DNA from: Octopus sinensis
Taxonomy: Eukaryota
DNA length: 24,969 nucleotides
Assembly (NCBI RefSeq): GCF_006345805.1
Contig: NW_021836196.1
Span: forward strand, 1 to 24,969
Reading direction: 5' to 3'
Part shown: in pieces, positions 350-24,969 of the stretch
How positions within the stretch are numbered: position 1 is the stretch's first letter
How the letters are laid out: every line of letters starts with the position of its first letter
The notes under the pieces: generated by a model
The model's database searches: none
The model's input: only the letters and a program-made list of their open reading frames with translations
Told to the model about the DNA's origin: nothing
Program-made: the position numbers and the translations under genes

Positions 350-2705
350 ATGTTGTTACACCTGTGTCTTTTATTGACTTTCTTCCACTGTTGTCTAAGT
401 GAAGATATCACATACCATGTTAAAGAAGAGAATGGTCCCTATACCTATATAGGGGACATTGCTACTGACCTACAGAAATCAGACAGCTCCTTCTTAAAGA
501 ATAAGGATTTAATTACATTTAGTCAACTGCAACAAAAGGGAGAACAGTTGTTCAATGTGACGAGAACAGGTAAACTGTACACTGTTGAGACATTGGATGC
601 TGAGTCTGTGTGTAGTTATGAGAAAGAATGTTTTGAAATCGTTAAAGTTGCTGTTCACAAATCCAAGACATTTATGAAGATCTTAAAGATTAAAGTCATA
701 ATAGAAGACATCAATGACCACCAACCTGAGTTTCCTGAGAAGGACATTACTATACATTTCCGAGATGGAGATGGTAAAGGCATGAAAAGGCCCATACCTC
801 ATGCTATCGACAAAGATATGAGTCCAGAAAACAGCTTAATTACTTATGAATTGAAAAAGGATAATGGACGTTTTTCTTTATCAGTTTCTAAACAAACAGA
901 TGAAATATCAACATTACGAATTATTTTAGAAGAGAAATTGGACAGAGAAAAAGAAGACAATTACAATATTGAAGTCATTGCTAAAGATGGAGGAACTCCC
1001 CAAAAAAGTCCATTTTAAATGTGAAAATATCTGTAGAAGATGAAAATGATAATGCACCACAATTTTCTCAAAGTATCTACAATGTCTCTATTGAACATAA
1101 ACATAAAAAGAATATTCCTGTAGTCACATTATCTGCCAGTGATTTAGATATTGGCAGGAATGGTAAAATATCTTTCTATTTTGCTAGGAAAACTACTGAG
1201 AAAGTGAAGAGAAACTTTAATTTAGATGAAAATACTGGAAAATTATATTTAGCTACATCTTCAAAAATTGATAAAGAAGAGTCTTTTAAATTATACATCG
1301 AAGCCAGAGATGATGGCAGTCCTCCTCTGAGTTCCATAGCAACAGTTATGGTAAATGTCATCAACCAGCAGAACAATCCTCCAAATATTGATGTGAACTT
1401 TATTTCTACACGGAATCACAACACAGCTACCATTCTGGAAGACATCAAAGTTGGTAGCTTCATTGCTTATGTGATGGTCACTGACAATGATGTTGGACAC
1501 ACAATGGACAGGTGAACTGTCATATCAAAGACGACACATTCAAACTACAGTCAATGGGATCGAAGGAATATAAAATAGTTCTAAAGAAAGCAGTAGACAG
1601 AGAGACAGGAACATTATCACTTTACTGTGTCGTGTGAAGATAAGGATTACCTGCTCTGAAAACTGATAAAGATCTGTCAATCCAAGTGTTGGATGTGAAT
1701 GATGTAGAACCACACTTTACGAAAGACACATTCAAGTTCCTTACCTATGAGAATGACAAAGCTAATTTCCCTATTGGCTTTATCAATGCTACAGACCCAG
1801 ATATTGGTAAGGGAGGTGAATTGTCTTATTCTCTGAGAAATAAACAGCAATATCGTCTGCCATTCCAGATTATCAACTCTGGCTTTATTTCAACAAACCA
1901 GTCTTTAGACAGAGAACACAGAGATTTCTATGAGTTTGAGGTTTTTGTGAAAGACAATGGAAGCCCATCTCTGAATAACACAGTGAATGTTGAAGTGGAA
2001 GTATTGGATAGAAATGATAATGCTCCATATTTTACATTTCCTAGTGTTGACCCTTTCACTCTTAATGTCCACTATCATCCGCAAAGTAAGAACGACATCA
2101 CAGTTCTGAAAGCATCTGATATAGACAGTCACATGAATGCTTTTCTCAGGTATGAAATCGTTTCAGGTAACGAGAGACAGTTATTTAAACTGGATTCGTT
2201 CACTGGTGTGTTATCTTACTCTCGCACAGTTTACCAAAATGATGCCGGATCATATGAGCTTGAGTTTGTTGTGAAAGACAGTGGTACTCCAGTTCTGTCA
2301 GCAACAACTAGTGTGTCTTTGACACTGACTGTTAGTAACAAGACGTCACCAATGTTCACAGCTGTGCACCTACCAAGTGATAACACAATAGATGCGACAT
2401 TGTTGATTATCATTGTAGTAGCAGCTGTGATAGTATCTATAGCTATTGTGGTTTCTATAACCCTGTGTATTGTGAGATGTAACAATGTGAGAAATAGCTC
2501 ATCTGAAAGAACAGCAGAAGAGAAACAGGCATACCAATGTCGCAATGAGATGAGACAGTTGATCTATCAAGGTAACAACAGTGTACCTGTGATGTCAGGT
2601 AATCGAGGAGAGATGACAGACAGATATGGTCATTCGAGGAGCCATTACTATCCTGAAGACTGGAAGACATCGACAATGAGTCGGACACTTCAGAAGTCTA
2701 CAAAG
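350..2705 (+). CDS. Pcdh: Protocadherin gene 1, large exon (signal peptide, EC1-EC6, TM, proximal tail), interrupted by 4 small indels as sequenced
   Basis: ORFs 350-1018, 1021-1515 and 1686-2765 are consecutive pieces collinear with intact gene 2. Cadherin motifs (IEDINDHQPEF, LDRE, DENDNAPQF, DVNDVEPHF, DRNDNAPYF), EC1 C-X5-C (CSYEKEC), hydrophobic TM (LLIIIVVAAVIVSIAIVVSITLCIV). Acceptor TTTCAG ends 293; phase-0 donor AAG|GTAAGC at 2706. Indels versus gene 2: -1 at C-run 998-1001, +2 at AC 1497-1502, -2 at 1605-1607, -1 at AA 1642-1643. Restored length is 2358 nt, equal to gene 2. Confidence 0.92.
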
Positions 2706-3469: not shown

Positions 3470-3622
3470 TATGTAATTATAGAGTGAAGTTTTGGGCTTA
3501 TAAACCTAATGTTTTATCTTTTCTTAATACAAAACTAGGTTAAATTATTCAATATCAGATATGGCACTGTTAATCCTAAATGATATATTTATAGTATGTG
3601 TTGTTACTATTGTATTTTACAG

Positions 3623-3776
3623 CAGAAATACAGTCAACCGATTGAGGTGACATCTTATGGAGACAACAGACCATCCTCTAACTATCCCACTGACACACTG
3701 ACCAGTCGTAAGAGTAGTGGACAGTGCTGGAGTGAGCGGTCAAGTAGACAGTATGAAGAAATACCAGCAATGTCAG
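3623..3776 (+). CDS. Pcdh: Pcdh gene 1 exon B (cytoplasmic, QKYSQPIEV...RQYEEIPAMS)
   Basis: NAGNAG acceptor (TTTTACAG CAG), phase 0 in and phase 1 out (TCA G|GTAG at 3777). Near-identical copies lie at 14729 and 24726, in the same position relative to each large exon. Confidence 0.9.
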
Positions 3777-3918
3777 GTAGGATAACTATCTTCTTCAATA
3801 TTTTATAATTGATTAATTAATTATCATTGGTCATCAATTTACTTGCTTAAATTCAGAAGTATTCATTGATAGGTCATCATTCCACTCTTGGCTGTGGTCA
3901 AATAGATATCCATATTTT

Positions 3919-4619: not shown

Positions 4620-4900
4620 CTCTCCACTAGATCTCTTTCAAGATGACATTTGCTTGCATAGTTTTGACACCAATTGATAGCATCCACTGTCTCAGTTTGG
4701 TTCCAATAAAACTTCTACATCCAACTTCTATAAAGAGGTCTTATTACTCTCCAACCAGCAGCTATACAGTCTTCGTGCAGCATCTCATGTCACTCATCTT
4801 TCCTAACCTGAGTTGCATCTGCATTGTTTTCATGTGGAACAGTCAATTCAACAAGATGTATTATTTTGTTTCCTCACCTTGTATTGTCAATCTGGCTCCT
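4620..4900 (-). mobile_element. Degenerate non-LTR retrotransposon fragment, restriction-like endonuclease (RLE; HERO/R2-superfamily-like)
   Basis: Minus-strand translation across stops and frameshifts gives KEPD~KIIHLVELTVPHENNADATQVRKDE*HEMLHEDCIAAGW~IEVGCRSFIG, matching my recollection of the PD..ELTVPxE..K..GW..EVGxRG RLE pattern. Confidence 0.62.
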
Positions 4901-5488
4901 TCTTTGTTGGTATTGGAAAGAGGCATTCACACCCTACAAGACCTACAATTAAATGGATGGCTTGAGCAAGGCTTAATTAATTGTCTTTAGTCACGTCAGA
5001 ATTCCGTAATGTTGACACATGAATTTTTTATCAGTTTGGTCAGCTTGCTATTAACTCAGTCAGTTCTGCTATTGTTTGTGACATAGTAGAGTTTATTGAC
5101 CCTTCATCAGCTTAGTATCCCTCTATTAATTCAGTTAGGTGTAACAACAGTGGTAAACCAGTAGAGTCTGTTGATAGATGACCAATTAGATCTTCCACCT
5201 AGTAACTCAACTGTGATACTGTTTGGGATAAGCCAGTAAAGCCTTCGGATCTTTCAGCAGCTAAGTCATCTGGTTATTCACCCAGTCAGCTGTAACACTG
5301 TGACAGAATTCAACAATGGTACCCCAGTAATCACTGATATCTTTCCATCTGCTAAGACAGCCCCTGGACAGCTCAGCTAGCAGTGTATATTATTAGTTAG
5401 ATTTATGAATTACAAACTACTGAGGTAAATATTATTAACACTATCCACTTCTCTTGTACCGTAAGTGAAAATTATCCTTATTATTAAT

Positions 5489-5990: not shown

Positions 5991-7420
5991 TTTGTGCTAT
6001 AGTCTGCTTGTGTGATAGACGTAACTCTCTCACCCTATTTAGCTCTACCACTTGGCATCTTAGGTGCCTTTAGCAAAGCCTACTTTGTTGCAAGCATTTA
6101 GGTCAGGAGCCAGCTGTGAGACTATCTTCCTCCCTCCTCCCAGCAATAGCAGAGGCCCACTAACACGTCATCGACACTGCCTTTCCTCCTAACTATAATA
6201 TTAAAAAAGAAAAACACAATATAATTCCAAGCATGTGCAGTGTTTGGTAGTGCTGTTGTCTGTATGTTTGTGCTTGTCTAATTACTGAGATATTGATTAT
6301 GAATTTGTCCACAACTTTTTAACCCTTTCCAAACTACCTGTTATTATGGGGATTGTTTCTGTTTTCAATCTCCACATTCTGATTATCTGTATTTCCAAAT
6401 CTTTATGTTTAGATAGTGAACACATTTCTTTTAAATATACACATCACTGTCTGTTTTAATATCTCCACTAATCTTGTACTGAAATATTTATGTCAACATG
6501 TCTAACTGAAATTGAAAGTATATTCTTGAAACTGTCAAATTATATGAAGTATTTCTTCTTGGTCCCTACCAGCAGTACCTGACTAATTTTCCCCTAATCT
6601 TCTTGTTTATGTGAATTGATATGTTATCAGAGTATGGTTACTTTATTGACTATACTGAAAGTAGGTCTATGGTCTATCATACCAAAGCAATGACAAGAAA
6701 ACCCTAACAAGGCCAATAGTTTTGTTTTAAAACTATTCCTAATTGAGATTAGGTCAGTTAGCCCAACAATACAGAGGCATATATTGTTATAATTTAGCCC
6801 TAGGTCACATTTGACTCACTAGATATATGACCAATGATATTCAAGTCAAGTCAGGATCATGCTTTCTCTTTTCAACACATAGTGTATCTAGGACTGTGTT
6901 AGTTTATTATCTTTCCTTTTTAAGGACAACAAGGGTTTGAATTGAGGGAAATTTGACTGTTATTTCTAGCAGGTTAATTACTCACGTATACTGCAATCCA
7001 TAAAGACCACCTTGCTGGCTCATCAAAAACCTGTTACAGATGACAATGTAAATGAGTTAATGAAAAGTAAATTAATTTTATAATATAAAAGGAGTTTTAG
7101 AAGTTTTTTTATGATGAAATATTTATTTCTTATTCATAAACTTAGCCTTCAAGAACAGTTATACATTCGTCTAATTTGATCAGCTTGTGAACCAGAGAAG
7201 TCACTAAATGAACTGTATTTTATTTAACAATTCCAATCTAATTAAGATATCATTTCAATGTAAATTATTTTAATTATTATTGTTGTTTTAATTTTATATT
7301 TTAGTTTAACTAACTGACTATAATCTTATTCACTGAATGTGGGCAAAAGATTGATTTCCAATTAATAACCTTTCTTTATGTAGAATATCTAAGATTATTT
7401 TATATATGTGTGTGTTTCAG

Positions 7421-7542
7421 GAATCTATGGTGGTGCCCCACCCGATGTATCAAGCACCAGTGAGAGAGACCATTACCAAGACAGATATGTGAAACCTCCA
7501 GAGAGACAGTTACCTTCAACACCAGATGTTGTTGTCAGTTAA
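7421..7542 (+). CDS. Pcdh: Pcdh gene 1 terminal coding exon C ((G)IYGGAPPDVSSTSERDHYQDRYVKPPERQLPSTPDVVVS*)
   Basis: TGTGTTTCAG acceptor ends 7420. Phase 1 matches exon B; TAA at 7540-7542. Homologous to gene 2 exon C (IYG...QDRYVKPPERQLP[S/A]TPDV). Confidence 0.85.
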
Positions 7543-8056
7543 GTGAGGTTGAGAGAGGAACACAACAGAAATAATATCTCACCTTCAACATTCACACAGT
7601 ATTTAAAAACAACAGAAATATATTAGTTACATAATAATATTATCTGCATTGAATTAGTTATATTCTTGTGTGTGTGTATATGTATATGGGATATTTCCTT
7701 AGAAGACTAATTTAGCAGCTTTGGATATGAACAATTTCAATCAAATTCTAACACTTTAATTGCATAGGCAAAAGAAATATTTTAAGAATTTAAAAATAAA
7801 AACTCAGACGAGGAAAATAAAATCTAAAATTTAAACAGTTTGTTAAATTATGATAAATAATTTTCATATAGATATACTTTCTCTGTTTACATATCTTGTT
7901 TAAATTTTCCAAATCTATCCTGAATAAGAGAGTTAGGTCAGACACACACACTAACTGTTATTGTCAATATTGTATTTACATTTTAAATTACACACACATT
8001 AACAACATCAGCCATATTTTGTTAATATAACCTCTCTGTTCTAAGGATTTCTATAT

Positions 8057-8202
8057 CAGTCTCTCTCCACATCAGACATGTTGGTGTTATATAGACTTAT
8101 CATGGCTGACTGTTAGTGGAGCTGATAGTGTATCTTTTTCTTGCCTTTGAGAGGGAAACTGCATCTAGTTGGAATGAGGCTGGAGTAAGCATCACCCATC
8201 TC
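8057..8202 (+). promoter_or_regulatory. Conserved non-coding block, copy 1 (putative promoter/5' leader of gene 2)
   Basis: Alignable by eye to 15943-16088 (same 146 bp span; shared catggctgactgttagtgg and taagcatcacccatctc) within otherwise unalignable spacer. Function is inferred. Confidence 0.5.
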
Positions 8203-8317
8203 CCCCTCTCTCTCTCCCTCTCTCACACACACATATACACTAAACATCACCCATCCTACTCCCTCTCCTTTTCTAAGTGTATATTACACACACGCTTTAT
8301 ACACCACACATTCACAG

Positions 8318-8487
8318 AGGAAGACTTGAGAGGGAACTGCTGGTTCCCACTGACTCACCACCAACACTATTCCATCAACATGAAGCCATTGTCACACCAT
8401 AGCAGCAGTGACACAGACAACCATTAACAACAGAACATTGGGACCAAGTCACAGTTTATACAACAAAGGATTTTACACACAATGAAG
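8318..8487 (+). other. Conserved exon-like element, copy 1 (probable 5' leader exon of gene 2; possibly an alternative last exon of gene 1)
   Basis: 158/159 nt identical to 16143-16301. Preceded by CAG and followed by the donor AAG|GTAAGT at 8488. The next downstream Pcdh acceptor ends at 10858. Confidence 0.7.
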
Positions 8488-10914
8488 GTAAGTTTATTGT
8501 TCAATATTATTTATTCAAATTACGTGAAATAATGATTTCATATGTAGCCTTCCTGTAATATGAAAATGTAATATTCTGATGGTGGCCATATTAGATCTGT
8601 GTCAGTTCATATTGAATGTCTTCTTTTCCATAATGGCTATCATATAATTTACTAACAGGAGAACATTAAAGAAATGGAATATTTATTTTGACTTAACTGT
8701 ATATTTTAAAAATTATTTTGAGTACGTAGCAGTTTCCTGTTTCATATTTTACCCTGTCATTTTCATTATATTCGTAGTAATTATGTTGTATGTAATCATT
8801 GAAGTATATGTGAGGTTTATTCTAATTAGTTTAAATGTAAAATTTCTCATTGAAAGTATGACCATTGAGGTAGAGGCCAAGGAGTTTGTATGTATGTGTG
8901 TATATATATCTCATATTGTATATGTAACAGTTTATATATATATATATATATATAAAGGGGTTTGTATGATTGTGTATAGAGGGATATATATTATTCAAAG
9001 AAATTCCAACTCTGTCTGTTTTTTATGTTTTATTTATATTCTTTATGATATTAATGTAGAATATAGAATATATAGTATAAATAGTATATATAATAAAATG
9101 AAATGAAGTATTGATTGTCTTATCATATATATATATATATATAAACTGTTACATTTACAATATGAGATCTAGAAATGTATGTCCCTGTATGCATATGGAT
9201 ATTTAACAGCAATGCCTTTGAAATATTCATATTTTATTCCCCAAATCATAGGAGCACTAACCATATGGGTGGATCACTTATGAAAAATCTAAACCTACAT
9301 TCTTGAACATTTAGGCTTGAACTAGTTTTCAATATTGATTTGTTAATTTTGAATAATTTAAATGTATTTTATCATATAAAACAATTTCAAAAGATATTTA
9401 CTTCATTTCCACTTTTAATTTAGACATTCTTTCCATTTGTAGATTTTCATATTATTTTAGCCACAGTTCCTTTAATATATTGGTTAGTTTTTATTCCTGC
9501 TAGAAATAAGCAATATATTTTCTCTCTACTCCCTTCAATAGATTTAACTAAACATTTTATTATAGTTGCTCCTTAATTATTGCATTTTATATCTTCCCTA
9601 CATCATATTGTCAAAGCATTCTATAAATGACTGGAGATACATCTCTTATCAGTATCCTTGTAATTGACTTCTTCCATGAAAACAGTTAATCAAAATGTTT
9701 GTGAATTCAACTGATATTTGTATTAAATAGGTAAGATGTTTTATCAGCATCAAGAATAATAATTCAAGTACTGAACATGTTAAAATAGGAGAATTAGATC
9801 TAATTTGATCAATCGTAATTTACGTGTGTGTTACTATTAATGGGGACTGTATTGTCGCTAATATAACTGAATTTCTTTCATATCTCACAGCATCATGCTT
9901 ATTCTTTCTTAATAGTTGGTGGAGACGTTTTTTCCTGAGAATATCTCTACAAAATGGTAACACTATAGATTAGATAAGTCAGCTATTTTGTAATGTAAGT
10001 TGGGATATAAAGCTGTGCCATGTTTCTTTAGATATACTGGCACCAGCGAATTAACTCAAGCTTTACCATGTATGACATGTGTATACATAATTGTGATGAA
10101 AGAGAAGAAAAGTATTTGATACATCCACTGCTCTCTCTCTTTCTCTCTCTCTCTGGTACCTTACAGTCATACCAAAATATTAGACATAGATTAATATCAG
10201 GTTAAGAAAAGCAATGTTTAGATGGTCAGGGATTTTCTGTTAATTGCCAAGAATGAGCACTGAAGCAGTTCCTTGTTATTGTCTGTTATGCTCTGCCTGA
10301 ACAAGCATAGTTATGCAATGTCTCCTTATAATTCTGCTTGCATGTAAACATGGCATGGAGTTGATGAGAAATTATCTAAGATTAATTCACAATTCTTATA
10401 TGCGTCTTATGATACACTTTGCTTTAATCAGAGTCTATACCATAGATATATATGCAGAGTGTGTTATTCTAGTTTGTGTATAATAATCAATGTTCCTAGA
10501 AGAGGCTGCATTCAAAGACAGTTTGGTTGGTATAAAAGGATCAGTTTGTTGGAATTTTAATATTTAACATTACTGTCATTGTTGTTTCTTGTTTGCATCA
10601 TATCCCTATTAAAGAAATTCATTTGCATCATTTGAACAATAAAAAACTACATGTAAAGAGGGATGTGTTTCATATTGTAGCTTTTGTAAATTTACATTGA
10701 TTTCTCATTAATATACAAATAGATTAATAAGTATTTTTTAATTAACATTTTTCATATGGCAACAACCAAAATAGAAAAGAATTTAGAGTAGATGAATAAA
10801 CATTATGACCAGTTATGTTTCTTTTTTCTCAATAATGCAATGAATATTTCTATTTCAGACCGAACATTTGAAGCTGTCTTTCCCTTGGATACTGTATTAA
10901 CAACAAAACCAGAG

Positions 10915-13272
10915 ATGTTGCGATTTCTGTGTGTTTTACTGACTTTCTTCCACTGTTATTTAAGTGAAGATATCACTTACCATGTTGAAGAAGAGAAGAA
11001 TTCCTACACTTATGTAGGGGACATTGCTACTGACTTACAGAAGGCAGACAGCTCCTATTTAAAGAACAAGGATTTAATTACATTTAGTCAACTGCAACAA
11101 AAGGGAGAACAGTTGTTCAATGTGACGAGAACAGGTAAACTGTACACTGTTGAGACATTGGATGCTGAGTCTGTGTGTAGTTATGAGAAAGAATGTTTTG
11201 AAATCGTTAAAGTTGCTGTTCACAAATCCAAGACATTTATGAAGATCTTAAAGATTAAAGTCATAATAGAAGACATCAATGACCACCAACCTGAGTTTCC
11301 AACTGAAGAAGTCAACATTCAGTTTTCAGAGAGAGATAGTAAAGGTTCAAAACTATCAATACCCAATGCTGTGGATAATGATATGGGTTATAAGAACAGC
11401 TTAATTAATTATGAATTGAAAGAGGATAATGAACATTTCTCTTTATTAGTTGCCAAACAAGCTGATGGTATATCATCATTAGAAATTATTTTAGAAGAGA
11501 ATTTAGACAGAGAAACAAAAGACAACTACAATATTGAAGTCATTGCTAAAGATGGAGGAACTCCACCAAAACAATCTGTTTTAAATGTGAAAATATCTGT
11601 AGAAGATGAAAATGATAACAGGCCGCAATTTTCTCAAAGTATCTACAATGTTTCTATTGAACATAAACATAAAAAGAACATTCCAGTAGTCACATTATCT
11701 GCCAGTGATTTGGATATTGGCAAGAACGGTAAAATATCTTATTATTTCAGTAGAAAGACTGCAGAAAAAATGAAGAGATACTTTCATTTAGATAAAAGTA
11801 CTGGAAAAATTTTCTTAGTACAATCTTTAGAGGTTGACACAAAAAATTCTTTAAAATTATACATTGAAGCCAGAGATGGTGGCAACCCTCCTCTCAGTAC
11901 CATAGCAACTGTTATGGTAAATGTTATCAACCAACACAACAATCACCCAAATATTGATGTGAACTTTATTTCTACACAGAATCACAACACAGCTACCATT
12001 CTGGAAGACATCAAAGTTGGTAGTTTCATTGCTTATGTGATGGTCACTGACAACGATGTTGGACACAATGGACAGGTGAACTGTCATATCAAAGATGACA
12101 CATTCAAACTACAGTCAATGGGATCAAAGGAATATAAAATAGTTCTAAAGAAAGCAGTAGACAGAGAGACACAGGAACATTATCACTTTACTGTGTCGTG
12201 TGAAGATAAAGGATTACCTGCTCTGAAAACTGATAAAGATCTGTCAATCCAAGTGTTGGATGTGAATGATGTAGAACCACACTTCACGAAAGACACATTC
12301 AAGTTCCTTACCTATGAGAATGACAAAGCTAATTTCCCTATTGGCTTTATCAATGCTACAGACCCAGATATTGGTAAGGGAGGTGAATTGTCCTATTCTC
12401 TGAGAAATAAACAGAAATATCGTCTGCCATTCCAGATTATCAACTCTGGCTTTATTTCAACAAACCAGTCTTTAGACAGAGAACACAGAGATTTCTATGA
12501 GTTTGAGGTTTTTGTGAAAGACAATGGAAGCCCATCTCTGAATAACACAGTGAATGTTGAAGTGGAAGTATTGGATAGAAATGATAATGCTCCATATTTT
12601 ACATTTCCTAGTGTTGACCCTTTCACTCTTAATGTCCACTATCATCCGCAAAGTAAGAACGACATCACAGTTCTGAAAGCATCTGATATAGACAGTCACA
12701 TGAATGCTTTTCTCAGGTATGAAATCGTTTCAGGTAACGAGAGACAGTTATTTAAACTGGATTCGTTCACTGGTGTGTTATCTTACTCTCGCACAGTTTA
12801 CCAAAATGATGCCGGATCATATGAGCTTGAGTTTGTTGTAAAAGACAGTGGTACTCCAGTTCTGTCAGCAACAACTAGTGTGTCTTTGACACTGACTGTT
12901 AGTAACAAGACGTCACCAATGTTCACAGCTGTGCACCTACCAAGTGATAACACAATAGATGCAACATTGTTGATTATCATTGTAGTAGCAGCTGTGATAG
13001 TATCTATAGCTATTGTGGTTTCTATAACCCTGTGTATTGTGAGATGTAACAATGTGAGAAATAGCTCATCTGAAAGAACAGCAGAAGAGAAACAGGCATA
13101 CCAATGTCGCAATGAGATGAGACAGTTGATCTATCAAGGTAACAACAGTGTACCTGTGATGTCAGGTAATCGAGGAGAGATGTCAGAGAGATATGGTCAT
13201 TCAAGGAGCCATTACTATACTGAAGACTGGAAGACGTCAACAATGAGTCGGACACTTCAGAAGTCTATCAGG
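10915..13272 (+). CDS. Pcdh: Protocadherin gene 2, large exon (intact, 786 codons; full protein about 875 aa with exons B and C)
   Basis: Open frame with signal peptide MLRFLCVLLTFFHCYLS, six EC repeats, EC1 C-X5-C and TM. Acceptor TATTTCAG ends 10858, homologous to gene 1's at 293, so the true ATG is 10915 rather than 10792. Donor AGG|GTAAGC at 13273. Confidence 0.95.
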
Positions 13273-13449
13273 GTAAGCTTTTTCACTGTTTTGTTACTAT
13301 ATTCTTACTTTTCAAACACATCACCTTTGTCTTAATTAATTTTGGAAAAAACAAAGAATTTACTAAAATAACTGTTGAATTAGGCTGGTGTTCGGGATGT
13401 GAATGAACATGAAATTTTGTTGGAAAAGCTTTAATCTATATTGCTTTAA

Positions 13450-13669: not shown

Positions 13670-14728
13670 TTAAAGCAGTAATTTTATTTTATGCAGCTAT
13701 GTGTGGTGTCAGGTGGGATGGTATTGAAGGGGTTAATTTTATAATCTGTCACTAAATAGTATTCTATGTCTTTTTCCGTTTGCTCCTCTTATTTCAGTTT
13801 GTCATCGTCATTATTATTCATTGCTGTATTGTTTATCATTCTCATCATTACCTTTTCTTTGATTCTGCTTTAGTGTTGATGAGGAGTTTTGACATCTTTC
13901 ATGATGTCTTCATCTTAGATTATTTCAATGTGGAAAATTCATGCTCCTTATTTTAGTAAATTATTTATGCCTGGTACCATATCGAATTATATCAGTTTAG
14001 CATTACTGTCATCAGTCTGTATCCAAGTGATACCCTACTCTATTTGTAAACTTTAAATTCCATACACTCCAAAGTACTCCTTGTACCCTTAGCACTTCTG
14101 TTCTTTTATTAATTTTGGTCACCAATCTAGAGGATATTACTATTTATTTATATTTGATATTGAAGATTGCTATTACACTTTATCACCTTTTTTTTGTGTG
14201 TGTTTCATATTTTTTACATGGAAAATTGTCTGCTTATTCTGCAAACCTTGTGCTATGACATATGAGAATATTATTTAGAATAGTCTTCATTGCTAACTAA
14301 TGCTTTAGTCATCTCTCATTCACTAAGTGTTTCTAAAACTAGAACTAGGACCTGAGTTTAACAAACCTCTGTGGTTTTCAAAGATTTTCATTCTTTTTTT
14401 GATCATCCAAAAAGGTGAGTAGCATCAGAAATGGTAAAGCATTGGATTAATTGTTTGACAGTATTTGTATCTAGTTGTATGCTGAGTCAAAATGCTGCTG
14501 GAGTTTGCCTTTCATACCAGTTATGTATGGAGGGCAGTTCTATTGACTGTATTCTTTCCATAAAAAGGACCTTGTGTCTGCATAAGAAATTATTTTACAA
14601 TTATTTTGCCAAACGGATTGATATTGGTAAAAAAGTAGGCAGTTGTTTTATACCAAAGATGGATGCATACAACTCCAGAGAAAGTATCAATTATATTATC
14701 TATATCTTGTTACTATTGTATTTTCCAG

Positions 14729-14882
14729 CAGAAATACAGTCAACCGATTGAGGTGACATCTTATGGAGACAACAGACCATCCTCTAACTATCCCACTGAC
14801 ACACTGACCAGTCGTAAGAGCAGTGGACAGTGCTGGAGTGAGCGGTCAAGTAGACAGTATGAAGAAATACCAGCAATGTCAG
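14729..14882 (+). CDS. Pcdh: Pcdh gene 2 exon B
   Basis: NAGNAG acceptor TTTTCCAG CAG; one synonymous difference from gene 1 exon B; donor G|GTAAGG at 14883. Confidence 0.92.
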
Positions 14883-14968
14883 GTAAGGGTAGTTTAAACT
14901 AAGAGAATAACAAGGATAAATATAATATACAAAACTGACTCTATGTATTACCATTGTATATGTTCCAG

Positions 14969-15084
14969 CTATCTATGGTATGCAACAGGACCCCACAGCC
15001 AACACTGAGAAACTGCCCCAGGACAGATATGTGAAACCTCCAGAAAGACAACTCCCTGCTACACCTGATGTTATAAACAACTGA
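14969..15084 (+). CDS. Pcdh: Pcdh gene 2 terminal coding exon C ((A)IYGMQQDPTANTEKLPQDRYVKPPERQLPATPDVINN*)
   Basis: 86-bp intron 14883-14968 ending TGTTCCAG; phase 1; TGA at 15082-15084; homologous to 7421-7542. Confidence 0.88.
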
Positions 15085-15307: not shown

Positions 15308-15539
15308 TATCAGTTGAATATAGTTAAAACATGGTCTGATTTTTACGTTTTTTATTATGGTCCTTTAACATTAAAAAATATTTTGTAATGCTCATAATGT
15401 TAAATTAGCATTTTCATATATATAGTGTATGAGAGTGCTAATTTAACTTAACGAGCATTACAAAATATTTTTTTAATGTTAAAGTACCATAATAAAAATT
15501 GTGAAAACCAGACCATGTTTTAACTTTGTTCAGCTGATA
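15308..15539. repeat. Long imperfect inverted repeat (foldback/MITE-like), ~110-bp arms, ~9-nt loop
   Basis: Left arm tatcagttgaatatagttaaaacatggtctg...ttagcattttcata (15308-15418) is the reverse complement of tatgagagtgctaa...cagaccatgttttaactttgttcagctgata (15428-15539), with scattered mismatches. Confidence 0.85.
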
Positions 15540-15942: not shown

Positions 15943-16088
15943 CAGTCTTTTTCTACATCAGGCATATTGGTGTTGTATAGACTTAACATGGCTGACTGTT
16001 AGTGGGGCTGATATTCTGTATTCTTTCTTTCTTCTTCTGTGTGAGGGGAAATAGTCTGAGTGAAACTGGAATAAGCATCACCCATCTC
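15943..16088 (+). promoter_or_regulatory. Conserved non-coding block, copy 2 (putative promoter/5' leader of gene 3)
   Basis: Paralogous to 8057-8202 and in the same position relative to the exon-like element. Confidence 0.5.
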
Positions 16089-16142
16089 ACACACACACAC
16101 ATTCGTATACTTACACACTCACTAAACATCACACAGCTACAG

Positions 16143-16310
16143 AGGAAGACTTGAGAGGGAACTGCTGGTTCCCACTGACTCACCACCAACACTATTCCAT
16201 CAACATGAAGCCATTGTCACACCATAGCAGCAGTGACACAAACAACCATTAACAACAGAACATTGGGACCAAGTCACAGTTTATACAACAAAGGATTTTA
16301 CTCAATAAAT
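16143..16310 (+). other. Conserved exon-like element, copy 2 (probable 5' leader exon of gene 3)
   Basis: Near-identical to 8318-8476. CAG before and GTAAGT at 16311 after. The next Pcdh acceptor ends at 19127 (alternative 19155). Confidence 0.7.
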
Positions 16311-17453
16311 GTAAGTCTGTCATTAATATTATATTCCTGTATAATTTACATTATGAAATTTATATATTTTCTTTATTACAAAACTAACAAATTTCTAATT
16401 TAGATTCTCATAAAGGAAAAATCTTTTAATTATATTTAGAATTTCCTTTGTCTTTTCCATTTTTTATTCCAAATGTTACTGTGTTTCTCTATAGTTCTTC
16501 ATGATGATTCATTTCAACTTGCCACAAAATCCTTATTACTTATCCTAATATATCCATAGTTTTATCTCTTTACAAATGGCCTTTTCTTTTTAGCTTTTCT
16601 TTCTCAGTCCTCAGTTTGTAATATACTTTTATTAACTGAGATCCAAATATTTCAGTTATTTTCAATACATACATTTGTTTTGTTGTATCCTCATGAGACA
16701 CTTATTTGTTAAAGAGTTTAGCCTTGGTACGGAAGGAAACAGTACGTAAAGGAAATGGATTGCTGCTTTGTCATTTACTTTCCTAAACTGTTGTCTTCTA
16801 TGAAGATTTAAATTTCTTAAATATAACAATTTCTTAGATTTTATCCATGTTTCAATCAGTAATAATTATTGACTAAAATAATTTAACCTAGATTTGAATA
16901 AATGTTTTAGTTTTTTTTAATTTATGCTAACAATTTTAATTTTGCTGGTTAGTGTTTTACTTATATTTGACTGAATCAACACCTGTATGTTTCTAGTGTT
17001 GTCTCTTCATACCTGTAATTAGGTAGAGTCAACTGTGGTGAAATTTGATTTGAAATTAAAGAATTTAGTTTGCTATTCTCCTGTTTTGGTTATTTCTTTT
17101 AAAATTGAAACTATTAATTAGCAGATATGTCAGTGACGAGTAATGTTGTTCCATTACTAAGATTTTTATTTATTTTTGTGTATATTTGCTTTTATTTTAC
17201 TCAATAATGGAGGTCAAATGTCTGAAGTTACATAATTAGGGGTATCCATCAATAGGTGATTATTTCTATTGTCTTTATTGAAGAAAAAATATGGGATTTG
17301 TTAGGTTGTTCTAATGTTGTTAGAGATACAAGTAAATTGAAATTATTACCATCAGACTCCATTGTGACCATACCATACTCCATTTTGTTCATCACAACTA
17401 TTTCTATGATGAACTAAGATTATTTTATTCCAAAAATTTAATATTACTATCAA

Positions 17454-19173: not shown

Positions 19174-21543
19174 ATGGCAGATATGTTTGTAGCAATTTGC
19201 ATACTTCTCTCTTGTATGCATTGTAGTCTGTGTAAAGACATTACCTTTCATGTAAAGGAGGAGAATGTTCCTTACTATTTCATAGGTGACATTGCTACTG
19301 AAACTCTTGTCACCAAAACTCTTTTAACTGACGATGCCAGTCTCTTCACATTTAATCAACTTAAACAGAAAGGAACTCAACTGTTTAATGTAACAAAAGA
19401 AGGAAAATTGTACACAGCTCAAACTTTGGATGCCGAAGTTTTGTGTCGATATAACACTGAATGTTACAGAACTGTGAAAGTTGCTATCCATAAACATAAA
19501 ACATTTATGAAGATCTTAAAGATTAAAGTCATAATAGAAGACACCAATGACCACCAACCTGAGTTTCCTCAGAAAGAAATCACTCTACATTTTAGGGAAG
19601 CAGATGGTAAAGGTATGAAGAAGGCTATACCTAATGCTGTTGATAAAGATGTTGGATATCAGAACAGGCTGATTAATTATAAATTGAGAAATAATTCTGT
19701 GAAATTTGTGCTGTCTGTTTCTAAAAGAGTGGATGGAATATCCAGATTGGAAATTGTTTTGAATGAAAAATTAGACAGAGAGCAAAAAGATATCTATCAT
19801 GTTCAGGTATCAGCTACAGATGGGGGATCCCCACCTAAAGAATGTGTCTTAAAGATAACAATAATAGTAGAAGATGAGAATGATAATTTACCTCTTTTCT
19901 CAAATGACCTCTACAATATTTCTATTCAGAATACTTATCAAATATACAAACCGATATTAACTCCTTCTGCAAATGATAAGGATAGTGGTAAAAATGGGAT
20001 GATTTCTTATTATTTTAGTCCAATGACTTCTGATATTGACAAAACATACTTTGGCCTGAATAAAACAACTGGAGATATATTTCTAATTGATGAAATTGAT
20101 ATTGATGAAGAGAGGATTATGTATACACTTTATATAGAAGCCAGGGATGGAGGTTTTCCACCCCTGAGTTCCATAGCAGCTGTCCATGTAAATGTTATCA
20201 ACGAACACAACAAACCCCCAAATATTGATGTGAACTTTATTTCTACACAGAATCACAACACAGCCACCATTCTGGAAGACATCAAAGTTGGTAGTTTCAT
20301 TGCTTATGTGATGGTCACGGACAATGATGTTGGACACAATGGAGAGGTGAACTGTCATATCAAAGACGACACATTCAAACTACAGTCAATGGGATTGAAG
20401 GAATATAAAATAGTTCTAAAGAAAGCAGTAGACAGAGAGACACAGGAACATTATCACTTTACTGTGTCGTGTGAAGATAAAGGATTACCTGCTCTGAAAA
20501 CTGATAAAGATCTGTCAATCCAAGTGTTGGATGTGAATGATGTAGAACCACACTTTACGAAAGACACATTCAAGTTCCTTACCTATGAGAATGACAAAGC
20601 TAATTTCCCTATTGGCTTTATCAATGCTACAGACCCAGATATTGGTAAGGGAGGTGAATTGTCTTATTCTCTGAGAAATAAACAGCAATATCGTCTGCCA
20701 TTCCAGATTATCAACTCTGGCTTTATTTCAACAAACCAGTCTTTAGACAGAGAACACAGAGATTTCTATGAGTTTGAGGTTTTTGTGAAAGACAATGGAA
20801 GCCCATCTCTGAATAACACAGTGAATGTTGAAGTGGAAGTATTGGATAGAAATGATAATGCTCCATATTTTACATTTCCTAGTGTTGACCATTTCACTCT
20901 TAATGTCCACTATCATCCGCAAAGTAAGAACGACATCACAGTTCTGAAAGCATCTGATATAGACAGTCACATGAATGCTTTTCTCAGGTATGAAATCGTT
21001 TCAGGTAACGAGAGACAGTTATTTAAACTGGATTCGTTCACTGGTGTGTTATCTTACTCTCGCACAGTTTACCAAAATGATGCCGGATCATATGAGCTTG
21101 AGTTTGTTGTGAAAGACAGTGGTACTCCAGTTCTGTCAGCAACAACTAGTGTGTCTTTGACACTGACTGTTAGTAACAAGACGTCACCAATGTTCACAGC
21201 TGTGCACCTACCAAGTGATAACACCATAGATGCGACATTGTTGATTATCATTGTAGTAGCAGCTGTGATAGTATCTATAGCTATTGTGGTTTCTATAACC
21301 CTGTGTATTGTGAGATGTAACAATGTGAGAAATAGCTCATCTGAAAGAACAGCAGAAGAGAAACAGGCATACCAATGTCGCAATGAGATGAGACAGTTGA
21401 TCTATCAAGGTAACAACAGTGTACCTGTGATGTCAGGCAATCGAGGAGAGATGTCAGACAGATACGGTCATTCGAGGAGCCATTATTATCCTGAAGACTG
21501 GAAGACATCAACAATGAGTCGGACACTTCAGAAGTCTACAAAG
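19174..21543 (+). CDS. Pcdh: Protocadherin gene 3, large exon (intact, 790 codons)
   Basis: Signal peptide, EC1 with CRYNTEC, six EC repeats and TM. Acceptor ATTTCAG ends 19127; phase-0 donor AAG|GTAAAT at 21544. Confidence 0.95.
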
Positions 21544-22482: not shown

Positions 22483-22860
22483 GAGAGAGATCATGTGTGT
22501 GTGTATGTGTGCGTGTGTGTGCCTGTGTGTGTGTATGTGTGTTTTTGTATCTGAAACGTGTGTTAAAGAAAAAGAAGGAAAGAAAGAAAAGGTAGAGAAA
22601 GAAGAAAAAATTTTTGTTGATCTCTTTGCAGCTGGTTAGGTTGTCAATAATAATTTATTCTTGGCTTTTAGTAATGGCAAATCCAGCTGTTTACTCCAAG
22701 GGGGGCAAAATGTCACTTTTCAAAAAATTGTCTGGATTTCCTTTTTGTCATTGTCTTGTGAGAGAGTGTGTGTGTGTGTTTGTGCATGTGTGTGTGTGTT
22801 TGTATCTGAAAATGGTGTTAAAGAAAAAGAAAGAAAGGAAGAAGGAGAGAAAATTTGTGA
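22483..22860 (+). repeat. Local imperfect direct duplication of a ~100-130 bp (TG)n + GA-rich unit
   Basis: gagagag..(tg)n..tttgtatctgaaa..gtgttaaagaaaaagaa occurs at ~22483-22615 and ~22758-22860. Confidence 0.65.
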
Positions 22861-22940
22861 TTTACTTTGCATTGTTTTGGCCTTACCCATGATCTTTTAT
22901 ACAATATATTCTACACAATGCTTCACAGTAATTATTCCGT

Positions 22941-22946
22941 TATATA

Positions 22947-22977
<31 letters not shown>

Positions 22978-23164
22978 ATGTATGTATGTATGTATATGTA
23001 TGTATGTATATATATGTATATATATGTTTGTATATATATGTTTGTATATATATGTATATATGTATGTGTATATATGTATGTATATATATGTATATATATA
23101 TATATATACATATATATGAATGTATATATATGTATGTATATATATATATATGTATATATGTATG

Positions 23165-23195
<31 letters not shown>

Positions 23196-23377
23196 GTATA
23201 TGTATATATATATGTATATGTATATGTATATGTATATATATGTATATGTATATATATATGTATATGTATATATATATATATGTATATGTATATATATATG
23301 TATATGTATATATATTGTATATGTATATATATATGTATATATATATATATATATTGTATATGTATATATTATATATG

Positions 23378-23414
<37 letters not shown>

Positions 23415-23568
23415 GTATATTTATATATATGTATATATATATGTATATTTATATATATGTATATATATATGTATATATATATATATGTGTATATATATAT
23501 ATATATATGCATATTTATATATGTGTATATATATATATGCATATTTATATATATGTATATATATATGT

Positions 23569-23625
<57 letters not shown>

Positions 23626-23714
23626 TATATATATATATATCATCATCATCGTTTAACGTCCGCTTTCCATTGTATATATATATGTGTATATGTATATATA
23701 TATATATGTGTGTG

Positions 23715-23746
<32 letters not shown>

Positions 23747-23770
23747 CATACTTGTATACACACATACTGT

Positions 23771-23809
<39 letters not shown>

Positions 23810-23820
23810 GTACATACACA
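22941..23820. repeat. Large compound (TA)n/(TATATG)n microsatellite
   Basis: About 880 bp of TA/TG repeats, which generates the spurious YI-rich ORFs; interrupted by a retroposon stub at 23641-23670. Confidence 0.95.
23641..23670 (-). mobile_element. Retroposon 3'-terminal stub inside the microsatellite
   Basis: catcatcatcgtttaacgtccgctttccat matches the terminus at 5489-5520. Confidence 0.65.
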
Positions 23821-24725
23821 CCATTAACCACCTCTTATATGATATCACCACTATCTACCCATTTGTATACGGCATTAACCATATCTACCTGGTTATATCT
23901 GATATCCTTGCTAGTTGAAGAATGCTAGACAGATTCAGATTCTGTGTTGTAATTCTGGGGTCTTTTAGCTTAGAAAGGTCATACACTGTCAACATTAATG
24001 GGGAAATTCAATTTCCTGTTTGTATTGATATCTGGAAGTAATGGTGGAAGGGGAATAACTATCTCTGCAAGGGAATGATGGGGAGGTGGGTGTGGACTGA
24101 ATCAGCTGAAGATGTCCGAGGCAGGGTTAAGGGAAGGAAAATATGAGTCATACAAGGAATCTATTAAATAGTTGTTAGAGGAAATTACTTATTTTACTGT
24201 GATTAGAGCTGCAGGAACTGTGGTTCTCTCTGTTGTCATTTCTCTAGTCTTAAATAAAGCTGAAGATAAGAAAACTGAAAAGTGAAGGGGAAAGGGCCTG
24301 GAATTGTTTCTCAAAAACGATTATTTTGTATTTAATGAATACAAATGATTATAAACGAATTATTATATGGATTGCTAAACATGAGTCACTCCGATGAACT
24401 TATTAAGGATAGAAATAAGGAAGAAAAAGAACACTGTTGATCAGACTAAACTTTGGTCATTTCCATTCATTCTGAAGACACGGAATAAATCTACTGCAAC
24501 AAAGAATTTTAGACAACACTCTCTAGTATTGCTTGCCACAGTGAATTTTGTAGGGTTGACCATAGAAGTATCTGTTAAAATTAATATAATATTACTAATA
24601 TTATCAATATTATTAACACAGTTTTTTTTAAATTTAATGGTGTGGTCTGGAAGTAGGGGCTGTGTTTACGGCCTATGTTTGTATTATGCCATACCCACTG
24701 ATAAATGCCTTTTATTACTCATCAG

Positions 24726-24876
24726 AAATACAGTCAACCCATTGAGGTGACATCTTATGGAGACAACAGACCGTCTTCTAACTATCCCACCGACACATTG
24801 ACCAGTCGTAAGAGCAGTGGACAGTGCTGGAGTGAGCGGTCAAGTAGACAGTATGAAGAAATACCAGCAATGTCAG
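24726..24876 (+). CDS. Pcdh: Pcdh gene 3 exon B (gene continues beyond the window)
   Basis: Single acceptor CATCAG ends 24725. Same peptide as the other exon B copies minus the first Gln. Donor G|GTAAGA at 24877. Confidence 0.9.
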
Positions 24877-24969
24877 GTAAGAGACTTTGTAATTTCTTCT
24901 TTTCATATAAGTGGTATTACTAAAGAGTTTTTGAAAATTTTAAAGAAACATATTTTCTAGTCTCGTGTA

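Follow-up and report, generated by a model that had tools for sequence, protein, structure and literature searches.

Concerted evolution of a membrane-proximal module in tandem octopus protocadherin genes, probably by short-tract gene conversion

The stretch of DNA described here (the window) is the complete unplaced contig VCDQ01002625.1, 24,969 bp, of the Octopus sinensis assembly GCA_006345805.1. It holds three tandem same-strand protocadherin genes of a three-exon plan, called here G1, G2, and G3. The 3' part of their first exon, coding for the extracellular cadherin repeats EC4 to EC6, the transmembrane (TM) helix, and the juxtamembrane tail, is nearly identical in the three genes, whereas the part coding for EC2 and EC3 is strongly divergent. 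A comparison with related loci of four octopod species shows that this module undergoes concerted evolution, and points to short-tract interlocus gene conversion as the probable mechanism.

Three protocadherin genes and their near-identical module

The first exons and the homogenised parts within them are as follows.

350..2705, + strand: G1 exon 1, with signal peptide, EC1-EC6, TM, and start of the tail (list of open reading frames (ORFs), alignment gaps); frame broken
503..735, + strand: second homogenised block, in the EC1 C-terminal half of G1; a 233-nt perfect match to G2 11068-11300
1381..2705, + strand: G1 copy of the homogenised module, EC4-EC6, TM, and juxtamembrane tail (identity and diversity profile)
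10915..13272, + strand: G2 exon 1, intact (five Pfam Cadherin matches plus Cadherin_2; translation)
11947..13272, + strand: G2 copy of the homogenised module (identity, diversity profile, per-domain silent-site divergence)
19174..21543, + strand: G3 exon 1, intact (ORF list, Pfam, translation)
20218..21543, + strand: G3 copy of the homogenised module (identity, per-domain silent-site divergence)

One large exon encodes the whole ectodomain together with the TM helix, the uninterrupted ORFs of 847 and 813 aa running from the signal peptide to the juxtamembrane tail and up to a GTAAG donor (the listed ORF of G2 spans 10792-13335, with the homologous signal-peptide Met at 10915). G2 and G3 each comprise five stretches of the Pfam family Cadherin, with Cadherin_2 for EC1, and in G2 the linker motifs of the DxNDxxPxF type lie at aa 161-169, 272-280, 381-389, 490-498, and 595-603. 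The ectodomain is colinear across EC1-6 with the solved delta-2 protocadherins (6vg1, 6vg4) and gamma-B4 (6e6b). The hydrophobic segment LLIIIVVAAVIVSIAIVVSITLCIV of G2, 25 residues long (aa 726-750), is the single TM helix, and no cadherin cytoplasmic-domain family is found among the Pfam matches of the window proteins at E<=0.001. Six EC repeats, a single TM segment, the lack of a classical catenin-binding domain, and the large first exon identify G1-G3 as protocadherins.

A preliminary description of the window, made from its letters, put the identity of 1381-2705, 11947-13272, and 20218-21543 at 98-99%, silent sites included. The alignment bears this out, as the three intervals are colinear and 98.2-99.0% identical (G1-G2 98.6%, G1-G3 99.0%, G2-G3 98.2%), with a low silent-site divergence (dS) between G2 and G3. 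The G1 copy is not a plain match, however: it aligns in this way only once three indels are allowed for, and the ORF of G1 is disrupted. The three-way module alignment has 33 variable columns, 28 of them substitutions and 5 indel columns, the indels all in G1, and the longest perfectly identical runs between module copies reach 219-424 nt. In the first ca. 1.0 kb of the exon, coding for EC1-3, identity is 66-86%: 34% of the sites separate G3 from either of the other two genes, and 14% separate G1 from G2. The differing sites in the 5' versus the 3' part number 354/1029 vs 24/1326 for G2-G3 (Fisher p 1.8e-112), 350/1028 vs 13/1323 for G1-G3 (p 7e-123), and 144/1028 vs 19/1323 for G1-G2 (p 8e-35).

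The profile of identity in 100-nt windows has the form of a step. Upstream of the EC3/EC4 linker G3 is mostly 53-70% identical to G1 and G2; from ca. 11900 to ca. 13160 (G2 coordinates) identity is 94-100% in all three genes, mostly 98-100% past ca. 12060; it then declines across the last ca. 110 nt of exon 1 and reaches the random level in the intron. The 5' edge lies where it had been placed, at the EC3/EC4 junction: perfect three-way identity starts exactly at CCAAATATTGAT, coding for Pro-Asn-Ile-Asp of the linker, and a ramp of ca. 80 nt in the conserved end of EC3 leads into it. The splice donor, named as the 3' edge, is indeed the point where alignability stops, similarity being gone within a few bases of GTAAG (2706, 13273, 21544), but the near-identical core ends ca. 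110 nt short of it, with 12 of the 28 module substitutions falling in the last 105 nt. Beyond a few bases past the donor, the first introns of the three genes cannot be aligned with one another.

The silent sites follow the same step. Between G2 and G3 the dS (Nei-Gojobori) is 1.56 in EC1, 1.31 in EC2, and 1.46 in EC3, and falls to 0.077 in EC4, 0.031 in EC5, and 0.013 in EC6, with 0.056 in the TM segment and 0.17 in the exon-1 tail. Such a strongly non-uniform dS along the gene excludes a simple recent duplication. The claimed contrast of divergent EC2-EC3 with EC4-6 therefore stands (dS 1.3-1.6 in EC1-3 vs 0.01-0.08 in EC4-6 and TM); EC1, which lay outside that claim, contains a block homogenised within subgroups. 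In the close subgroup the dS of EC1 is 0.116 vs 0.61 for EC2 and 0.54 for EC3, and a valley of EC1 diversity at aa 106-155 is present in 13 O. sinensis/vulgaris units and also in Argonauta. Exon 2 displays a weaker version of the homogenisation pattern, with a 3.3% difference within a lineage.

The module across octopod species

The comparison covers 21 gene units of four octopods, O. sinensis, O. vulgaris, O. bimaculoides, and Argonauta hians. The loci are five units on an O. sinensis chromosome (L001), five of O. vulgaris (L002), three of O. bimaculoides (L003), and three intact units of A. hians (L004), together with an edge-of-family gene pair lying ca. 210 kb downstream in O. vulgaris and Argonauta (L005, L006) and, on the opposite side, a neighbouring pair outside the family (L007, O. 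vulgaris P0039; L008, A. hians P0040). All units at the related loci have the same three-exon structure. Neighbour-joining trees with 200 bootstrap replicates were built for EC1-3 and EC4-TM separately.

The two parts of the exon give different trees. EC1-3 clusters by ortholog, with Ob_1+Ov_5, Ob_2+Ov_3, and the Octopus/Argonauta edge pair each recovered in 200/200 replicates. EC4-TM clusters by lineage, as the preliminary description had expected of concerted evolution: every ortholog pair is recovered in 0/200, the Argonauta core forms a clade in 200/200 and is joined by the Argonauta edge gene in 173/200, and the O. sinensis/vulgaris core is joined by the O. vulgaris edge gene in 164/200. 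Copies of the module are 97.7-99.5% identical among the O. sinensis/vulgaris units and 98.3-99.1% among those of Argonauta; the figure is 95-97.6% between O. sinensis/vulgaris and O. bimaculoides, in the available parts of the latter only, and 93-94% when Octopus is compared with Argonauta. The EC1-3 parts of paralogs are 64-94% identical, and their best matches lie across species.

The silent-site divergence of the module is 0.014-0.08 within Octopus, 0.03-0.05 within Argonauta, and 0.19-0.24 between the genera. Equal conservation of EC4-6 between distant species had been named as evidence against concerted evolution; the module is very conserved between the genera (replacement-site divergence dN 0.02-0.03, dS ca. 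0.19), yet less alike than within lineages (dS 0.01-0.08). The O. bimaculoides-O. vulgaris orthologs have a dS of 0.20-0.24 in EC1-3 and of 0.08-0.14 in the module, the latter regardless of orthology, and within O. bimaculoides the module dS is 0.02-0.06. When 13 Octopus units are set against 3 Argonauta units, 47 sites of the module are fixed and 1 is shared-polymorphic, compared with 7 fixed and 229 shared-polymorphic in EC1-3. Moreover, the Argonauta paralogs all carry genus-specific residues from EC4 to the tail, plus the insertion SSKKQEY. The tree conflict, the dS values, and the site classes are together characteristic of concerted evolution of the module and of orthologous inheritance of EC1-3.

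Diversity among the 13 O. sinensis/vulgaris units ranges over 0.13-0.37 in EC2-3 but does not exceed 0.03 between ca. aa 383 and 790, and the profile of the three Argonauta units is the same. The edge orthologs P0028 and P0033 pair together in EC1-3, and inside a shorter tract each matches the array of its own species (difference 0.000-0.01). These tracts, at ca. aa 400-660 in O. vulgaris and ca. aa 430-505 in Argonauta, have divergent coding sequence on both flanks. In the O. sinensis protein P0036 the tract is restricted to EC5-EC6.

The runs of N in the O. bimaculoides locus (4868-5476, 11281-12112, and 20773-20782 of L003) fall exactly in EC4-EC6 of each unit, and because these gaps sit in the module the models P0034, P0043, and P0121-P0125 are truncated or fused. 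Gaps in this position fit real near-identical repeats beyond the resolution of the assembler.

Unit architecture and other features of the window

The window comprises the following features besides the first exons.

3623..3778, + strand: G1 exon 2, 52 aa, QKYSQPIEV...EEIPAMSG (tblastn with the P0001 tail, 98%)
7411..7542, + strand: coding part of G1 exon 3, ending ...YQDRYVKPPERQLPSTPDVVVS and then a stop (tblastn 95%, translation)
7929..8642, + strand: conserved non-coding blocks after G1 exon 3 (self-blast, blast against L001 and L002); G2 counterpart at 15943-16332
14729..14884, + strand: G2 exon 2 (tblastn 98%)
14955..15078 (approximate), + strand: divergent exon-3 variant of G2, ending ...DRYVKPPERQLPATPDVINN and then a stop (weak tblastn match, 51%; translation)
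24723..24878, + strand: G3 exon 2 (tblastn 98%), the G3 exon 3 lying past the contig end

The view that these are complete tandem genes and not variable exons with shared constant ones is upheld, as every unit of the window, L001, L002, L003, and L004 has its own copies of exon 2 and exon 3 (tblastn). The vertebrate alpha/gamma plan of variable first exons joined to one shared constant set is thus not that of the octopus array. The array extends over at most ca. 470 kb in O. vulgaris and Argonauta hians, judged by flanking non-family or edge genes, and lies at ca. 79.9-80.4 Mb of OX597827.1 in the former and ca. 9.78-10.25 Mb of BAAFZT010000037.1 in the latter. The distance from exon 1 to exon 2 is 0.9 kb in G1, 1.5 kb in G2, and 3.2 kb in G3.

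Several NCBI gene models of O. sinensis and O. vulgaris (L001 10001-39688, L002 10001-34167, L005 6001-35017) connect an exon 1 with copies of exons 2-3 that belong to units further downstream, several units and 24-30 kb away, despite nearer copies. They may be an annotation artefact of near-identical exons, or may reflect a real read-through splicing resembling the vertebrate variable-to-constant type. Vertebrate clustered loci carry a conserved promoter element before each variable exon, with stochastic promoter choice; in a 9-mer search for such a motif across 18 octopus upstream regions, each 800 nt long, no word was common to more than 7 of them. The sequence TTGTTTCAG is common to several units (Os_2 to Os_4 of L001, Ov_1 and Ov_5 of L002) ca. 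55 nt before the start codon; it resembles a splice acceptor, and would point to an exon of the 5' untranslated region (UTR) that is missing from the annotation and to promoters located further upstream.

The indels of G1 relative to G2 and G3 are -1 after 999, +2 (AC) at 1497-1498, -2 after 1604, and -1 after 1641; in the alignment three of them lie within 1381-2705 and one upstream. All are frame-breaking and sited in homopolymer or AC/AG dinucleotide contexts, and G1 has no nonsense substitutions. In the NCBI annotation G1 is represented by the 349-aa fragment P0130, whose last residues, 'GHTMDR', coincide with the +2 frameshift, and by a model fused with G2. Broken ORFs are found also in 3/5 units on the O. 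sinensis chromosome segment and in 1/5 in O. vulgaris. The broken units, G1 included, may be pseudogenes still undergoing conversion or long-read assembly errors.

In G2 the standard exon 3, as found after G1 (7411-7542), is replaced by the variant, situated ca. 75 nt past exon 2. The C-terminal end of the variant, ...ERQLPATPDVINN, is like that of the O. bimaculoides protein P0043, ...ERQLPSPPDVINQ, while the preceding stretch is unlike. P0043 is 96% identical in protein sequence to G3 over EC1-3, and is likely the G3 ortholog. The exon-2 acceptor is a tandem ACAG|CAG (NAGNAG) in G1 (3615-3623) and G2 (14721-14729) and a single AG in G3; the tandem acceptor would account for the annotated X1/X2 isoforms one Gln apart (STKQKYSQ vs STKKYSQ).

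The non-coding blocks, located ca. 0.4-1.1 kb past exon 3 and 85-98% identical, follow each of the O. sinensis and O. vulgaris units. Polyadenylation-type signals occur at 7795 and 7816 (AATAAA) and at 8665 (ATTAAA). The blocks at 7929-8642 and 15943-16332 are probably a 3'UTR or an intergenic or regulatory element. Intron 1 of G3 carries a degenerate (TA)n microsatellite at 22941-23809 (ca. 870 bp, 77% matches), responsible for the spurious ORFs on both strands at 22661-23928. Palindromic (self-complementary) segments lie at 15308-15539 (ca. 230 nt, past G2 exon 3) and 8905-9171 (ca. 260 nt, past G1), and may be transposon remnants.

Probable gene conversion, its alternatives, and known systems

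The homogenised tracts are bounded on both sides by non-homogenised sequence, EC2-3 on the 5' side and unalignable intron on the 3' side. Paralogs more alike than orthologs within a tract, the conflict between tract and flank trees, and the bounded patches are together the marks of interlocus conversion, and since the introns are unalignable and the exons form islands in non-homologous surroundings, the process is patchy gene conversion and not whole-unit duplication. Short-tract interlocus gene conversion is thus put forward, with a probability of about 0.8 judged from sequence comparison, as the evolutionary mechanism of module homogenisation. Conversion would repeatedly overwrite the last ca. 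1.3 kb of exon 1 (EC4, EC5, EC6, TM helix, and juxtamembrane tail) in all members, and would have a weaker effect on exons 2-3 and, in subgroups, on the EC1 C-terminal half, so that the module would evolve as one unit per lineage, i.e., by concerted evolution. EC2-EC3 would be spared from overwriting and so would keep ancient, orthologously inherited differences (dS above 1). Their high divergence probably blocks heteroduplex extension, producing a self-reinforcing homology cliff at the EC3/EC4 linker, and selection probably acts against converted variants that lose their distinct binding specificity. The 3' limit of the tract would be set by the introns, which share no homology.

Pure purifying selection, in which old paralogs without any exchange would have been kept alike by an extreme constraint on EC4-TM, silent sites included, is very improbable. 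The strong conservation between genera (dN 0.02-0.03, dS ca. 0.19 vs 0.85-0.97, dN/dS about 0.1) and the lower EC4-TM dS of the non-family ortholog pair speak for it, but the paralogs of a lineage share its derived bases (the 47 fixed against 1 shared-polymorphic sites, plus the Argonauta insertion) and form lineage clades in 200/200 replicates in EC4-TM, whereas their EC1-3 parts are grouped with those of orthologs; constraint alone cannot have independent paralogs fix identical silent changes. A somewhat less remote, though still unlikely, origin of the pattern is unequal crossing-over or recent segmental duplication, which would yield chimeric units with 3' halves that are young duplicates. 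Tandem same-strand arrays favour such exchange, the unit structure is regular, and some units share ca. 115 nt of intron 1 and the downstream non-coding blocks. However, it would bring intron and intergenic DNA along, and in G1-G3 intron 1 is unalignable and the spacing to exon 2 unequal; exon islands in non-homologous introns, as well as edge genes with internal tracts divergent on both sides, also disagree with it.

Polishing is capable of homogenising repeats, and the window is an unplaced long-read contig in which G1, like three units of the O. sinensis chromosome, is frameshifted in simple-sequence contexts, so repeats might have been collapsed or pushed to a consensus by short-read polishing. 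This artefact, which the preliminary description itself had named as a threat, is the explanation given the least credence of all: the pattern recurs in four assemblies of four species, and the independent O. vulgaris and Argonauta hians assemblies display the same step profile and boundaries with intact ORFs and each with its own lineage consensus. The O. bimaculoides gaps lie exactly at the module, as real repeats would give, and copy-specific substitutions have been kept. The end of similarity at the splice donor, the homogenised islands formed by exons 2 and 3, and the position of the homogenised part in the 3' portion of the transcript would agree with a cDNA-mediated (retro) conversion, in which 5'-truncated reverse transcripts recombine with the array and homogenise exons from the 3' end inwards. 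It too is highly improbable, as homogeneity peaks in EC5-EC6 and drops 3'-ward (dS 0.17 in the exon-1 tail, 3.3% difference in exon 2), the reverse of a 3'-anchored gradient; certain units have conserved intron flanks beside exons 1 and 2, and the separate EC1 block is homogenised with the variable EC2-3 between it and the module.

Several points nevertheless weigh against short-tract conversion as a full account. It is read from a comparison of present-day genes. At the depth of O. bimaculoides and O. vulgaris lineage clustering is moderate (164/200, with O. bimaculoides monophyly in 46/200), and the O. bimaculoides module is mostly an assembly gap; the copies of O. sinensis and O. vulgaris are intermixed, so that conversion since the split of these species is not readable. 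The boundary of the tract varies among members: the domain-sharp edge of the preliminary description is found at the EC3/EC4 linker in core units, but in edge members the 5' limit lies elsewhere, so that it is not strictly set by the domains, and shorter tracts are present in the edge genes and in P0036. Furthermore, the between-genus module dS of ca. 0.19 is about 4-5 times below that of EC1-3 of syntenic orthologs (0.85-0.97), and the non-family pair P0039/P0040 is similarly asymmetric (dS 0.30 in EC4-TM vs 0.85 in EC1-3). Neutral concerted evolution predicts no such drop, and hence selection or bias at silent sites probably also contributes. Finally, the functional reading given below comes entirely from analogy with vertebrate structures.

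Between the genera the edge pair has an EC1-3 dS of 0.97, and core pairs have 0.69 or more. Either the silent sites of the 3' half are constrained or biased, or the EC1-3 dS overestimates neutrality. P0039/P0040 might be part of a different family that also undergoes conversion, or slow change at silent sites might be general in the 3' halves of octopod protocadherin exons; with a dS profile that is not flat, the pair was rejected as a flat neutral control. A non-coding neutral calibration was likewise ruled out, the introns and spacers of seemingly orthologous units of O. bimaculoides and O. vulgaris being mostly unalignable or interrupted by N. The G+C content of third codon positions is slightly raised in the module, at 0.35 vs 0.28, a shift judged too small for GC-biased conversion to cause the 4-5-fold lower dS. 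The predicted RNA fold of 1000 nt has a z of -2.79 in the module vs -0.77 in EC1-3 (20 shuffles), and six 200-nt windows inside the module give z between -1.2 and +0.5. According to bioRxiv 10.1101/714394, octopus protocadherins are enriched for adenosine-to-inosine (A-to-I) editing, so that an RNA-level constraint would be a reasonable candidate. That a nucleotide-level function also keeps the EC4-TM coding sequence, beyond conversion and protein-level selection, is doubtful, though conceivable; the candidates may be a double-stranded RNA substrate for A-to-I editing, an exonic regulatory element for isoform choice, or selection for a homology platform.

In tandem families such as the rDNA, histone, and globin genes, concerted evolution by conversion or unequal exchange makes paralogs within a lineage closer than orthologs. 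The octopus array differs from these families in that homogenisation is confined to part of one exon, with ancient diversity beside it. Whole-gene trees of cephalopod protocadherins consequently mix two histories, and EC1-3 is the part to use for orthology.

Clustered and delta protocadherins form an antiparallel EC1-EC4 trans dimer with an EC2:EC3 specificity interface and an EC1:EC4 affinity interface, affinity and specificity regions of the dimer having reportedly been distinguished by Nicoludis et al. in 2016. EC5-6 and the membrane region of vertebrate protocadherins mediate shared signalling and assembly in cis. The dimer structures (5k8r, 5szl, 6e6b, 6vg1, 6vg4) are colinear with the octopus proteins throughout EC1-6. 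Diversity of the latter peaks in EC2 and EC3 and is low in EC4 and the C-terminal half of EC1, a sequence profile that would fit a generic EC1:EC4 interface and an EC2:EC3 interface for specificity. It is possible, although held at somewhat less than even odds, that a variable head sets homophilic specificity while a constant stalk, anchor, and proximal tail keep cis assembly and signalling compatible. The prediction is that EC2-EC3 encode octopus binding specificity and EC4-EC6, TM, and tail the shared cis or signalling functions. A neuronal identity code for the octopus array, as proposed in the preliminary description, would be an analogy.

The system closest to the octopus array is that of the vertebrate clustered protocadherins, in which regional conversion of EC4-6, leaving out EC2-3 as the specificity determinants, is the accepted reading according to passages of PMC4978886, which cites Noonan et al. 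2004b on zebrafish and mammals. The two systems are alike in having tandem large exons, each coding for six EC repeats, TM, and a proximal tail, and in a dS lowest in the membrane-proximal ectodomains and highest in EC2-EC3. They differ in that the octopus units are complete genes, each having downstream exons to itself, and in that the octopus tract takes in all of EC4 and the TM segment. The dS contrast is also larger, from 1.56 to 0.013 between G2 and G3 (ratio >100), compared with highest/lowest ratios of ca. 2-5 in the X. tropicalis groups considered from Table 2 of Etlioglu et al. 2016 (PMC4978886). The protocadherin expansion of cephalopods is described in passages of PMC4978886 and PMC9068888 as independent of the vertebrate clusters and not orthologous to them, and in passages of PMC6339937 and PMC9068888 as arising by full gene duplication and not by shared constant exons. 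The expansions treated there (Albertin et al. 2022, PMC9068888; Styfhals et al. 2019, PMC6339937) concern the same gene family and the same array type. A domain-resolved analysis with tract boundaries, per-domain dS, and a cross-species test in cephalopods was not found in a full-text literature search, including passages of PMC6339937 and PMC9068888, and regional conversion, known in vertebrate protocadherins, appears in these sources to have been suggested for cephalopods in general terms only. The octopus module is a very clean, independently evolved example of this known phenomenon. Protocadherins expanded independently in cephalopods and vertebrates, both with large, complex brains, and the comparison suggests that a design of variable recognition on a constant chassis would have arisen twice, in octopods through conversion between complete genes.

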